DNA from: Piromyces finnis finn
Lineage: Eukaryota > Fungi > Neocallimastigomycota
DNA: 20,640 nucleotides
Direction: 5' to 3'
NCBI GenBank assembly: GCA_002104945.1
Contig: MCFH01000182.1
Span: 1-20,640 of the forward strand
Below are positions 1-7,977 of this stretch, in pieces. The position numbers were made by a program, and so were the translations under genes. The notes beneath the pieces were generated by a model. It saw only the letters and a list, made by a program, of their open reading frames with translations, had not been told where the DNA came from and ran no database searches. Positions within the stretch are counted from its first letter, which is position 1. Each line of letters begins with the position of its first letter.

Positions 1-763
1 TAATTATTAATTGAATTAATATAGATATTTAAATGATAATTACAATAACTAAGCTTCCCTGGAAGGAGATAAAAATACATTTTAATTTGTATTATCATTT
101 TTTATAAAAGTATTATATATAAAAATTGAAGTATTTAATTAATTGAATAAATTTTATTATATAGATGTTTAGATAATAATTACATTACTGAGCTTCCCAC
201 TATTAAAAGTGAATATATTTTATTAGGTAAACATTTTTCGTCATTATTTTTTCTAAAAACTAATTAAATTTATAAATAGCGAAAATAAATTATTTTATAT
301 TATTATCAATTTTTTCTTTCAAGTTAATTAAACAAATTTATATTTAAAAAATAGTATACAATACAGAGAATATTTTTCGTCTCCTGTCATTACTGGTGAT
401 GAAGTAATACAATTATTAATTAAACTATTAATTATTTTTAAAATATAAAATTTTGTTAAAAAAAAAAGCAAAATAATAAAATTGTTAAATTTAATAGATA
501 CATAAAATAATTTTATAATGATTTAATTAAATAATTACCTAATAAAAAATATATTCACTTTTAATAGTGGGAAGCTCAGTAATGTAATTATTATCTAAAC
601 ATCTATATAATAAATTTATTTCAATTAATTAAATACTTCAATTTTATATATAATACTTTTATAAAAATGATAATACAAATTAAAATGTATTTTTATCTCC
701 TTCCAGGGAAGCTTAGTTATGTAATTATCATTTAAATATCTATATTAATTCAATTAATAATTA
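1..763. repeat. Inverted repeat: 1-230 is the reverse complement of 535-763 (about 305-nt non-palindromic spacer); places inverted copies of two gene D exons on the + strand
   Basis: 1-13 taattattaattg pairs with 751-763 caattaataatta. aagcttccctggaaggag (51-68) and gagcttcccactatt (190-204) recur reverse-complemented at about 696-713 and 563-577. The arms differ only by homopolymer-length indels. Confidence 0.93.
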
Positions 764-3700
764 AATAAATATATATTAATAAATTATTTATATTTTCATT
801 TTATTTAGACTATATTTTTATTATAATCTGTTTTTGATTAAATACAAATGTTGAATATAATTATATATAATTTCAGCTGGAATCTTGGTTATTTTATTAT
901 TGTTTAATTCTCTACATTAATTAAATATATATAAATAAATATATAATTAATAAAATATTTTAATTAATAATTAATTATTTATAATAATACTTTAATAATA
1001 AGTAATATAAATGCTTACAAATATTTAATACCCCCAAACTTAGCAGGAATCTCACTAATTCTATTATCATTGAGTTCTCTATATTAATTAAATTATTATT
1101 TAAATTAATTAATCAAATATTTCAATATATTAATTAAAGATAAATAATAAAATATATACAGTGAATAAAGTTTAGTGAGATTTCCAATCTCAGGAGGAAT
1201 CTCACTAATTCTATTATCATTGAGTTCTCTATATTAATTAAATTATTATTTAAATTAATTAATCAAATATTTCAATATATAATTAAAGATAAATAATAAA
1301 TATATACAGTGAATAAAGTTTAGTGAGATTTTTCAATCTCAGGAGGAATCTTGGTTATTTTATTATTGTTTAATTCTCTACATTAATTAAATGATGATTA
1401 ATTAAATTTATATAAATATCAACTATAATTAATTATACATATAATATTTTATAAATATATATAAATACATACAAATGTTCAATTCTTCCTGTTTTAAAAG
1501 GAAACTCGGTAATTTTATTATCGCTTAATTCTCTATATTAATTAAATTATTATTTACATTTTTTAAAAAAATATAATTAATAGAATATTTTAAATTTTAA
1601 ATCATTGTATATAATACTTTTATTATAAATAATATAAATCTATACAATCTCCAAACATTTCCAAGTTCAGCAGGAATCTCAGTTAAACTATTATTATTTA
1701 AATATCTTTAAAAATATTAATGGATTATTTAAATTATATAAATAAATATATAATTAATAAAATATTTTAAATTATAATTATTATATATAATGATTTTATG
1801 ATAAATACTTACAATGAAAAGCTTTCATTGCAATTTACAATTTCCTTTGAAACTTAGATATCTTGTTATTAGACAATTCTCTATGAAATATTTAAAATAT
1901 TATCATTAAATTATCTCCACTATTATTATAAATTCTTGATTATATAAATAATATAAAGAATAATATACAAAACTCTAATATTAGAAAGCTTTCCAGCTGA
2001 ATCAGGAATTTCGGTAAAATTATTATAATTTAAATTTCTATTTAAGTTAATATTTTATAAATATTTTTTAATATTATTTTTCATAAGATAAAGCATAATA
2101 TTGTTAACATAGAAAAAGAGGAAAAACATACAAATACTCAATTGGAAGATTTACTATTTATCAAAAATCTCAGATAAACTATTATTACTTATATATCTAT
2201 AAAATACAATAAATACAATTATATATATTAATAATTAAGTATTATTTTTACTTTTCAATTATTTAAATTCATACAAATAAGTAAGATTAATCATTCCTTC
2301 GATAGAATCAGGAAGGACAGTTAAATTATTGTTTGACAAATATCTTAGTAAATTAAATAATATGAAAAATATATAAATATTTAATAAAGTATTTTTATGT
2401 ATTATATTATATTATATTATATTATATTATATTATATATATTATATTATATTATATTATATTATATTATATTATATTATATTATATTATATTATATTATT
2501 ATATTATTTTAAAATGTAATGAAAACTTACAAACAATGAAGTTGAGTAAGCTTTCCAATGGTATCAGGAAGAGTTGTTAATTATTTCCGAATAAATCTCT
2601 ATAAGATTATTTTAAATAAAAACTTTAATATTTATTTTAATTATTTTCTAAATCAAGAAAAACATACATTCTTTCAAGTTTTGTAAGATTTCCAATGGAA
2701 TCGGGAAGAGTTGATAAATTATTTTCTATCATCTCTCTAATATTTACAAATATTAAATATTAAATATTAATAATTGATTATAAAAATATTTATTTATTTT
2801 ATAAAGTATTCATCAAATTATATAAAACAAAATTTATACAGAGATGAAAGATTAGAAAAATTTCCAATGGAATCTGGAAGTGTTTCCAAATTATTATAAT
2901 TTAAATACCTATAAAACAATTATCAAAAAAAAAAAAAAGAATAAATTAATACAATTCCAATTCTATTCAATAATAACATAAAATTTTATATTCTCTTTTT
3001 TTTTAAAAAAAAATAAATCATAATTTAATTGTATTTTAAAAATTTATCACTTACAGTTGTTCAAGTTTTGTAAGCTTTCCAATGGTATCAGGAAGAGTTT
3101 TTAAATTATTATAATTTAAATACCTATAAAAGTATTTTAAGAAAAGCATCAATATTAAAAAACTATTATTATTTTAATTATTTTCTAAATAAAAAAACAT
3201 ACAGTAAAGTGAGATTACTAAGGTTTCCAATTGAATCTGGAAGTGTTTCCAAACTATTACTATTTAACTCCTATAAAACAATTTTCAAAAAAAAATGAAT
3301 AAATAAATATTTTAGAATTTTTTAAAAAGAATGAAATTTCAATTCTATTCAATAATAATATAAATTTTTTATATTCTCTTTTTTTTTTAAAAAAAAAATA
3401 AATCATAATTTAATTGTATTTTAAAAATTTAGCACTTACAGTTGTTCAAGATTTGTAAGTTTTCCAATGGTATCAGGAAGAGTTTTTAAATTATTTCCGT
3501 ACAAAATTCTATAAATTTATATAATTATATTAATAATTAAAATCAATATAAATGTTAAAATAATTAATATTTAATATCTTTTTTTTTTTTTTTTTTTTTT
3601 TTTTGGAACACATACAACTCTTTTAGATTAACAAGATTTCCAATTTCAGAGGTAATTTTAGAAAAATCATTACCTCCTAAATTTCTTTTTAATTTATTTT

Positions 3701-4884
3701 TTAATTTTTAAAATTATTAAAACTTTACAATGAAATTTTTTTTTCTCTTATTAATTTTATTATATATGCATTATCATACAATTTTTCAAGATTGGTAAAA
3801 TTTCCAAAAAAACACGGAACCAATTCTAATTTATTATTTTGTATATCTCTTTAATTTTTTAAAAATAGAATTATTATACAATAAAATAATTTATTACTAT
3901 TATTTCTTATATTTTTACTATAAATAATAATAATACATACAAACTCCAAAGTTCAGTCAAATTTCCAAATGAATCTGGGATGGAAGAAATTTCATTACTA
4001 TTTAAATGTCTATTTTGTATTTTTATTTTAAAATAAGAAAATTAATAAAATATAATAATTATGATAATAATCATGTGATAAAAATGCACTTACAAATTCC
4101 ATAAACCTCTTAATTCACCAATTTCATTAGGGATATTTTTTATATTGTTATAGCCTAAATCTCTATTATATTTTTTATATATAATTTAACTATTATTATT
4201 AATGTTTTTATTTAATTTTATATTTAAATATTTAAAAAATAATTACTAACAAATATCTTAGATTAGTGAGTTTTCCTATTTCATTTGGAATATTGTTTAT
4301 ATCATTTTTGTATAAAAGTCTTTTTTTAATTTTTTTATTAAAATGAATATTTATTTACTAAAATTGATTTATAAATACTTTTATTTTATAATTAAAAAAA
4401 AATATACAAACAAATGTTCAAGATTTTTAAGATTTCCTATTTCAACTGGAATTTCAGTCAATTTATTTATAGAAAGATCTCTATATAAATTTATTTAAAT
4501 AAATGAATAAAATATAAAATATATACAGGTGGATAATTTAGGGTGATTCTCTTTAACTTATTTTAACTTTATTTACTTACAATTTTTTTAAGGTTGTTAC
4601 ATTAAAAATAAATTCAGGAATCTCTAATAAGTCCTTTCTAGACATTAATCTTAATATTTTTTTTATTTTTTTAGTACTTTTGATAAACTACCAAGTAGAT
4701 AAGAATAATATATTTATTTCATTATTAATAATATCAATACATACAATTCAATGGCATCTCCATTACTATCCTCTTTACAGTTATTATAATTTTCTACTTT
4801 TAGTTGTTCACAAATTTCTTCGCATGAATATCCAAATGCTATTGTAATCAATAGCAATAAATTCATAATAAATTTTAATATCAT
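365..4884 (-). CDS. Gene D: secreted/surface LRR protein, signal peptide + Cys cap + 26 single-repeat LRR exons (mostly 23-aa repeats); 3' end not identified
   Basis: Hand-spliced, all introns GT-AG. Exon 1 4884-4745 (MILKFIMNLLLLITIAFGYSCEEICEQLKVENYNNCKEDSNGDAIE). LRR exons: 4649-4581, 4480-4412, 4319-4251, 4162-4094, 4009-3941, 3848-3780, 3684-3616, 3508-3440, 3270-3203, 3123-3055, 2908-2840, 2736-2668, 2598-2531, 2343-2275, 2196-2132, 2037-1969, 1880-1813, 1705-1646, 1532-1473, 1377-1308, 1228-1160, 1078-1019, 911-846, 739-677, 602-539, 424-365. Examples: LDLSINKLTEIPVEIGNLKNLEH, LYLNYNNLKTLPDTIGKLTKLEQ. Six exons are 1 nt off frame (68, 68, 65, 68, 70, 64 nt), each explicable by a homopolymer length change, so this is either an intact gene with sequence errors or a young pseudogene. 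Confidence 0.88.
1045..1351. repeat. Near-perfect tandem duplication, period 150/149 nt, flanked by AGGAATCT
   Basis: tgagttctctatattaattaaattattatttaaattaattaatcaaatatttcaatatat occurs at 1071 and 1221. AGGAATCT occurs at 1045-1052, 1195-1202 and 1344-1351. Confidence 0.95.
2401..2507. repeat. (ATATT)n pentanucleotide microsatellite, intronic in gene D
   Basis: Direct reading; about 20 units with small interruptions. Confidence 0.95.
2861..3495. repeat. Diverged direct duplication of an exon-intron-exon segment (about 2861-3110 vs about 3224-3495)
   Basis: Shared blocks: aatctggaagtgtttccaaa, ctataaaacaatt, ttctattcaataataa, aaataaatcataatttaattgtattttaaaaattta, cacttacagttgttcaag, tttccaatggtatcaggaagagtttttaaattatt. 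Confidence 0.9.
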
Positions 4885-7213
4885 TTTTATTAATTATTCT
4901 TTACACCTTTTGGCAAAAGATTAAAAAAAAAAAAGGAAGGAAGAAAGAAGAAGAAAAAGAAAAAGAAAAATTCTTCTTTTATACCTTTTAAATTCGGAGG
5001 TGATTTAAAGAATTTCTTTTAAAAAAATTAATTTAAATAAATTGAATATATTGAAATATATTGTAATATATAATTAAATTTTTTAATTAAATTTTTAATT
5101 CTAATTAAAAAAATTTATTTAAATATAAAAAAATAAATTAAAATATCTAATATATTACAATATACTCTAATATATAATTAAATTTAATATTATTATCTTT
5201 AACAAATAATATTATTTTTAAATAACTAATATTTTTTGTAAAAATAATAATATTTGTAAAAAAAGATTTTAATAAAATATATATTGTTATATTGTTATAT
5301 ATAAATATTATAAATATTGCTATACATTATTAGGAATCCTCTATTTTTAAAGGTTTTTTTTATAAATAATTATTTTAAAAATAATAAATTGAAAATGCTG
5401 ATGAAAGAAAGGCAGATTTATCATTTATTTCCCCAAAAAAAATTCTTTTAAAAGAAATTCTTAATTCGGAAATTTTTTTTAATTAAAAAATTATAATTAA
5501 TTAATTATATTGTAATATATATTACTTTATACTATAATATATGATATTTATTAATTAATTATATGCATGTATAATAATTAGACTTTAATTATTATACTTG
5601 ACTATTTTACATTATAATTTTTTGTATATATATATTTTTGAATATTGAATATTAAATATTTTCTATGATTATTTAATAATAAATAATTTTTAATGAAAAG
5701 AATAACTAATAATTAAGAAAGAGGTATATCAAAGATACTATATAGGATTATGGTTACTTTGATAACAAAGATATTTTTATTATTGATATAATGTAATAAT
5801 AAAATGAATTATAACAAATGATTATAGTGATAATACAAAGAAGGTAAGCCTGGAAAAAAGAATTGGAAAGAAGAAAAAACAAATTAACAATATAGAAACT
5901 AACATAGTAAAGAAAATTTTTATATTATATACAATTTATGCTATTTTATAAATTAGATATATATAATACTTATTATTATAAAATTTATTATTATTAGATG
6001 AGAGTACATACTCATAAAACATCTAAGGCTTATACTTTTGTTATTAAATTTAATATTCTTCTAATAATATAATAACATTAATCTATTTATATATCATATA
6101 AATATAAAAGTTTCATATATAAAAATTATGATTATATAGTCTAGAAATAGTAATACTCAAAAAAGTATATAATAGAAAAATTCACAATATTAATAATAAT
6201 TATATAACTTGATTTATATCATTTATAGGAATGATATAATATAATGAATAGTACACACCTAATATTGGAAAAATTCATAAATGGATTTAATATAAAACTG
6301 AATTATATTATATATAAAATTTAATATATATATTAACTAAAAATCCAATAATCTATTTTAACATCATTTTAATTAATAATATAATTTTATAAATGTTAGT
6401 GTCATGCATTATATAAATAGATAAAAAAAAATAATATCTAATATAAAAAAACCTTTAATCCTTAATAATTTTATTTCAATAATTTTTAATTATTAATATT
6501 TATATTTATTTTATTTGTCCTTTATAGACTCACTAATACATAATACATTAAATAAGTTGTAATTAAAAATGAGATAAAAATTGTTAAATATTTTACATAT
6601 TATTTACAAAATACAGTATTTTTTGGTTAAAAGATTCACGATGTTTGTTATAAACATCGTCTGATTCGTTATATTCAAATTCTGTAATATCAATTGAACA
6701 ACTTTCTCTATTTAATATTTCGTTTGTTAATGAATTTGTATAAACAAATTTAGGGACAGAGTGATCAAAGGAAGAATTTGAAGTGACAGAGTTTTCATCA
6801 ATAGTTATAATGATATAATCTCCATTCTTACTTGTTCCAAAAATACTACCTACACATTCATGTCCAACAAGATAGTTTTTAGCTGGCATTGTAACATCTG
6901 CTGTAATTTTGTAGATTAAATAAATATTAAATTGATTATCATCAATAACTTCAATCTTTCCATTTGAACTTTTACCGAATTTATAACCAGAACATCCTTT
7001 TTGAGTACAGGTATAAATGCCATTCTTACTATTAATATAATAACCTAAATCCCCTTTTTTATTACATTCAAAAATATCATTATTAGTTTCACAATAATAA
7101 AGTAAACCTGGTATAGATTTGTCTTCTTGAAGTAAATGTTTATCTTCATCAACGACCAAGTTATAAGTTTTTTCTTCACAATTTACATCCTTATCTTCAT
7201 TACACTTTAAAAT

Positions 7214-7379
7214 AATATAATATAATATAATATAATATAATATAATATAATATAATATAATATAATATAATATAATATAATATAATATAATATAATATAA
7301 TATAATATAATATAATATAATATAATATAATATAATATAATATAATATAATATAATATAATATAATATAATATAATATA
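7214..7379. repeat. (AATAT)n pentanucleotide microsatellite, about 33 units, intronic in gene E
   Basis: Direct reading. Confidence 0.97.

Positions 7380-7767: not shown

Positions 7768-7977
<210 letters not shown>

Follow-up and report, generated by a model that had tools for sequence, protein, structure and literature searches.

A 148-nt tandem duplication with a hybrid leucine-rich repeat exon in a CBM18-LRR gene of the gut fungus Piromyces finnis

The LRR gene and the contigs that carry it

The window analyzed here is a 20,640-nt stretch of Piromyces finnis DNA with a G+C content of ~15%, and it comprises the whole of one contig (C93) of an assembly that totals 56,455,805 bases in 232 contigs. 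The published assembly is PacBio-only (SMRT) and was built with Falcon, FinisherSC, and Quiver (56.46 Mb, 232 contigs; PMC5622200). Positions 231–20610 of the window align to the main contig C177 (34697–55135) at 99.43% identity, and the 20.5-kb alignment has 91 gap openings but only 2 mismatches; the same locus is present on a third, small contig (C75). Thus, C93 is a redundant, indel-rich duplicate of the C177 locus and does not represent an independent locus. Because both C93 and C75 are redundant with the C177 locus and have inverted starts, they are poorly polished by-products of the assembly. Specifically, window positions 1–236 are an inverted copy of C177:35004–35239 (about window 538–773) and are probably an assembly artifact standing in place of the true 3′ end of the gene. 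On C75, positions 1–865 are an inverted copy of the adjoining 880 nt, a direct fold-back that is typical of a missed PacBio adapter, whereas the inverted start of C93 derives from ~300 nt further in.

The errors revealed by comparing C93, C75, and C177 are almost all indels. Three bases (1130, 1149, and 1329) are present only in the window and absent from both C177 and C75, and they are consensus errors. We used C177 as the reference and then mapped the coordinates back onto the window. On C177, all 25 of the exons that encode single leucine-rich repeats (LRRs) have an intact frame and AG/GT borders, while an indel separates the window from C177 in 6 of these 25 exons, and the window copies of e14, e16, e18, and e21 (the four indel exons whose reading frame was followed) are out of frame. 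A pseudogene reading of the window copy was ruled out, since the frameshifts are missing from C177, and a ciliate origin with reassigned stop codons, suggested by the in-frame TAA and TAG codons in the window exons, was rejected, because C177 shows these to be indel errors. Genes read from C93 may therefore look frameshifted or pseudogene-like even though they are intact, and C177 is the better check.

An exon finder applied to C177 and mapped to the window placed an LRR gene on the minus strand, with the part inside the window spanning 231–4884. The gene runs from an ATG at C177:39373 (window 4884) to a stop codon at C177:33911. Exon 1 begins at this ATG, lies in an open reading frame at 4714–4884, and encodes a hydrophobic, signal peptide-like N-terminus together with a Cys-containing cap; exon 2 starts from 4637. 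These are followed by 25 consecutive exons (e3–e27; window 4480 down to 365), each of 60–69 nt and each encoding one repeat of the form xLxxNxLxxIPxxIGxLxxLxx (23 residues per roughly 69-nt exon). Every one of them has 1 leading and 2 trailing bases, and all of their introns are in phase 2; introns of the gene are of the GT…AG type and about 80–300 nt long. The array thus consists of tandem repeats within the 20–30-residue range and with the LxxLxLxxN(x)L core by which LRRs are defined, carried one per symmetric (phase 2-2) exon. Adjacent exon-plus-intron units are ~55% identical, and a few short blocks, located at conserved codons and the intron 3′ end, are the same in both. When four of the exons were run against Pfam singly rather than as a joined protein, the best match of each was LRR_4, LRR_1, or LRR_8 at sub-gathering scores (E-values of 9e-4 to 0.02), as expected for a query that consists of one 22-residue repeat.

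The last exon (C177:34726–33911, minus strand; 272 codons) lies beyond the usable part of the window and encodes a Cys-rich cap, a Thr-rich linker, and two hevein-type CBM18 domains, the latter matching Pfam PF00187 (Chitin_bind_1) in two stretches with 59.4 bits (cutoff, 27.8) and an E-value of 4e-16. The product is probably a secreted LRR protein attached to the chitin wall. Among the best 150 HMMER hits to the last exon (1.84 billion representatives), none had the LRR exon peptides and 1 carried several LRR motifs; the hits arise via the CBM18 domains. Since the combination of LRRs with CBM18 is missing from these best 150 hits, it may be an uncommon architecture. A search of metagenomes for orthologs with the last exon and a degenerate ELNDNRISEIP pattern gave no match, and a public gene model or ortholog with these exons was found neither among the best 150 HMMER hits nor in the metagenomes.

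Other features of the region include low-complexity tracts, both in the introns of the LRR gene [(TATTA)23 at window 2400–2511 and an A26 run at 3579–3604] and in intergenic DNA [(TAATA)34 at 7208–7379 and (TAT)70 at 7768–7975]. A 188-codon open frame (6593–7159, minus strand), with nothing significant in Pfam, lies between the LRR gene and a downstream trio of LRR genes. Elsewhere, 726-codon intron-free frames with many LRR matches and identical scores occur at C177:8807–9763 and C192:302495–303451; the genome therefore also has intronless LRR genes, and these two frames are possibly another duplicated segment. The family profile yielded 1,212 preliminary LRR candidates, of which some lie in short exons and others in long intron-free frames.

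The duplicated unit, the hybrid exon e22, and two further tracts

Tandem Repeats Finder reported a repeat at 1034–1399 with a period of 150, 2.4 copies, 91% matches, and a score of 595. The two copies lie at 1045–1194 (150 nt in the window; 148 nt in C177, 35524–35671) and at 1195–1343 (149 nt in the window; 148 nt in C177, 35672–35819). The preliminary description of this DNA had reported a 150-nt tandem duplication running from mid-exon to mid-exon; the structure is real, with the unit length corrected to the 148 nt seen in C177 and C75. The 8-mer AGGAATCT on the plus strand, which reads AGATTCCT on the coding strand, begins at 1045, 1195, and 1344, the third occurrence (1344–1351) following directly after the second copy, so that, as had been noted, each of the three junction points has the same 8 nt. 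In C177, the two copies plus the trailing 8-mer agree at 155 of 156 positions. The sole difference (C at 35661 versus T at 35809) yields GGA (Gly) in e22 and GAA (Glu) in e21 and is the same in C177, C75, and C93. Abutting, near-identical, full-period copies with a short shared sequence at the borders and the junction are what characterizes a tandem duplication.

Three minus-strand exons are involved. The first, e21 (1308–1377; ELNNNKITKIPPEIENLTKLYS), is exon C of the preliminary description; the extra T at 1329 brings its window copy to 70 nt, whereas the copies in C177 and C75 are in frame at 69 nt. The second, e22 (1160–1228; ELNDNRISEIPPEIGNLTKLYS), is 69 nt long and in frame, with its AG acceptor and GT donor intact. 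The third, e23 (1019–1078; ELNDNRISEIPAKFGGIKY), is exon A of the preliminary description and has 60 nt. Unit alignment revealed that e22 with its upstream intron equals e23 with its upstream intron up to AGATTCCT and that, past AGATTCCT, e22 with its downstream intron equals e21 with its downstream intron. Accordingly, the first 11 residues of e22 are a copy of those of e23 and the last 11 a copy of those of e21, which confirms the proposal that e22 is a hybrid, with e23 as the likely donor of its 5′ half and e21 as the likely donor of its 3′ half. An independent phase-2 exon search reproduced the borders originally given for these three exons and for e24 (846–911, minus strand; ELNNNKITKIPAEIIYNYIQH, 66 nt).

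A second, shorter identity links e21 and e24. Positions 879–926, which run from intron position −15 to exon position +33 of e24, are exactly identical to 1345–1392 in e21, and the match cannot be extended either way; as already recognized, these two exons thus share their 5′ half and splice acceptor, together with the final 15 nt of the preceding intron. The flanks on both sides show identity at background level. Because the 48-nt patch is bounded on both sides and leaves the length unchanged, it looks like a short gene conversion tract. Its ends coincide with the outer edges of blocks common to all these units (ATTTAATTAAT in the intron and AGATTCC in the exon), and for this reason the segment truly transferred between e21 and e24 may be as short as ~30 nt.

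The third tract is older and lies at 2840–3508 (minus strand), where e9(+13)–e10(+48) matches e11(+13)–e12(+48) over ~275 nt at about 95% identity, with one 20-nt indel and flanks at background identity. This tract ends inside exons, at AATAATTT (N-N-L codons) and ATTGGAAA (I-G-N/K codons), and not at the IP codons. Its copies are non-adjacent and hence do not form a simple tandem duplication. The 5′ ends of e11 and e12 also have 29 nt in common, ending in AATAATTT. Altogether, three tracts were found, all in this one gene, and their ends fall at four different conserved blocks.

The gene has in-register exact runs of 137 and 48 nt, and 8 exon pairs share runs of at least 23 nt. In comparison, such runs reach at most 22 nt in nine further arrays with one LRR per exon from this genome (78 exons, 414 within-array pairs), and no recent mosaics were found among these 78 exons. 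The identities in the CBM18-LRR gene are thus far beyond chance. Non-coding LRR cassettes were not observed in the introns. When the 5′ and 3′ half-exons of the gene were compared by nearest neighbor, the result was informative for near-identical pairs only, the halves being too short.

Probable origin of the duplication and the proposed role of the IP codons

The 148-nt tandem duplication is probably the product of one homology-driven unequal exchange or slippage event that added a spliceable exon, e22. Removing one unit gives a presumed ancestral order of e21, intron, e23. When the e21 and e23 units are aligned one unit out of register, they are 55% identical and have five exact blocks of at least 6 nt in common (ATATTT, ATTTAATTAAT, TAGAGAA, ATAATA, and AGATTCCT), with AGATTCCT being the second longest of them. 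A misaligned exchange between e21 and e23, resolved within this common 8-mer, would have duplicated a segment in which the intron is framed by the 3′ half of e21 and the 5′ half of e23. Candidate routes are unequal crossing over and sister-chromatid exchange, and the AGATTCCT microhomology could have served just as well for replication slippage or template switching. Unequal crossing over and replication slippage lead to an identical product and cannot be told apart from that product alone; the earlier proposal of an unequal crossover inside exons therefore holds as a description of the exchange, with slippage fitting equally well.

The outcome would be one extra in-frame 69-nt exon and a solenoid longer by one turn. 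The single Gly/Glu substitution would have arisen between the copies after the duplication, and a separate, non-reciprocal gene conversion between e21 and e24 would have moved between 30 and 48 nt. At one substitution per 148 nt, the duplication is probably recent, though not brand new. The mechanism and timing of the duplication, as well as the expression of e22, are what we infer from the genomic sequence. Since e22 repeats the existing concave-face (LxLxxN) half of e23 and the convex half of e21, it is predicted to contribute one more turn with no new residues and no new binding surface.

The preliminary description went further and saw the conserved IP codons (ATTCC) as a preferred recombination point, at which the β-strand half and the convex half of different repeats are mixed and which yields a diversification finer than whole-exon shuffling. 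Two recent events, each with one end in AGATTCC(T), point toward such a preferred or programmed site, as does the restriction of exon pairs with exact runs of at least 23 nt to this gene, with 8 pairs here and none in the nine other arrays. However, identical blocks between units are few and the motif is simply one of them, and the other end of the 48-nt patch is a conserved block in the intron. Moreover, the ~275-nt tract ends at the NNL and IGN codons, the 29-nt match between e11 and e12 ends at NNL, and the hybrid exon brings no new residues. AGATTCCT needs no hotspot to serve as a breakpoint, since it is one of the few common blocks where a homology-driven exchange would be likely to land; the breakpoints appear to fall in whichever conserved block offers identity, as any homology-dependent process predicts. 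The lack of recent mosaics in the 78 exons of the nine other arrays, a limited sample, argues against an ongoing, family-wide process. We therefore consider a preferred IP site very unlikely, and neither this part of the preliminary description nor the finer diversification derived from it is upheld; what was found does not have the features of a programmed or hotspot-driven (VLR-like or Ectocarpus-like) diversification.

It is similarly improbable that gene conversion overwrote a pre-existing third exon with no unit added. Conversion between repeats is common, and a short conversion-like patch exists in the same gene (e21/e24), but the near-identity at e21–e23 spans a complete period, including the whole intron (155/156 positions). 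In addition, the copies abut exactly, which is the signature of a tandem duplication, and mimicking it would take two independent, perfectly abutting conversions.

A further reading, to which we likewise give a slim chance, is that the duplication is an assembly or consensus artifact of an AT-rich repetitive region and that the genome holds one unit only: the window contig is admittedly poor (91 indels versus C177, an inverted start, and six falsely frameshifted exons) and the published assembly is PacBio-only, but reads of several kb span the whole 300-nt array, so that copy number needs no guessing, two units are present in all three contigs (which come from one assembly and one culture and are incompletely independent), and the copies differ by a substitution, the same in three contigs, rather than by an indel-type error. 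With the structure present in three contigs and one substitution separating the copies, assembly stutter is an unlikely source of the two units, and a single exchange or slippage event remains our preferred explanation.

Relation to known LRR systems and significance

In plant resistance genes (Cf-4/9, RPP5, and flax L/M), intragenic unequal crossing over between misaligned, adjacent LRR units alters how many repeats a gene has and creates hybrid repeats. Because one exon mostly contains the entire LRR array of these genes, a hybrid repeat results, whereas in P. finnis the product is a hybrid exon. In the assembly of lamprey VLR genes, short homologies inside the LRR-coding sequence reportedly act as switch points for copy choice and give rise to hybrid LRR modules. 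VLR assembly is a programmed somatic process that employs donor cassettes and cytidine deaminases; in contrast, the P. finnis gene shows one germline-type event and no donor-cassette system.

The closest parallels concern genes with one LRR per exon. Tetrahymena LRR genes are built from tandem 90-bp exons with an extreme phase-2 bias, and unequal crossing over has been described among these LRR exons (Xiong et al. 2019, PMC6564038). The P. finnis gene resembles them in its exact-length tandem LRR exons and phase-2 introns, but the Tetrahymena system comprises thousands of genes with 90-bp exons and is associated with a LINE-like element (PMC6564038), whereas P. finnis, a fungus, has exons of 60–69 nt, no retroelement was seen, and there is a single recent event. 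In Ectocarpus, ROCO and LRR-kinase genes likewise carry one LRR per 72-nt exon, and intragenic and intergenic recombination alters the number and order of the LRR exons (Zambounis et al. 2012, PMC3341825). There, turnover is high and introns contain many rearranged or inverted non-coding LRR exons, none of which were present in the P. finnis gene or the nine other arrays. Because unequal exchange between LRR units and exons has already been described (for exons, in Tetrahymena), as has the shuffling of LRR exons in Ectocarpus, no new principle is involved: the event follows a well-known growth route for such genes and is a tidy fungal instance of it, with no special diversifying mechanism seen.

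A broader idea, which we regard as a long shot, is that microhomology at conserved LRR codons recombines half-repeats in surface-protein genes of gut fungi often enough to produce strain-level variation in cell-wall-anchored LRR proteins, with the present gene, which has three tracts against none in the other arrays, as an active example. If this were true, half-repeat recombination would parallel, in the germline, the copy-choice logic seen in lamprey VLRs. As it stands, the locus offers a clean, datable gain of a unit in a repeat protein whose symmetric exons each carry one repeat; the fungal lineage has received little study, and the gene pairs an LRR ectodomain with chitin-binding anchors, an unusual combination.
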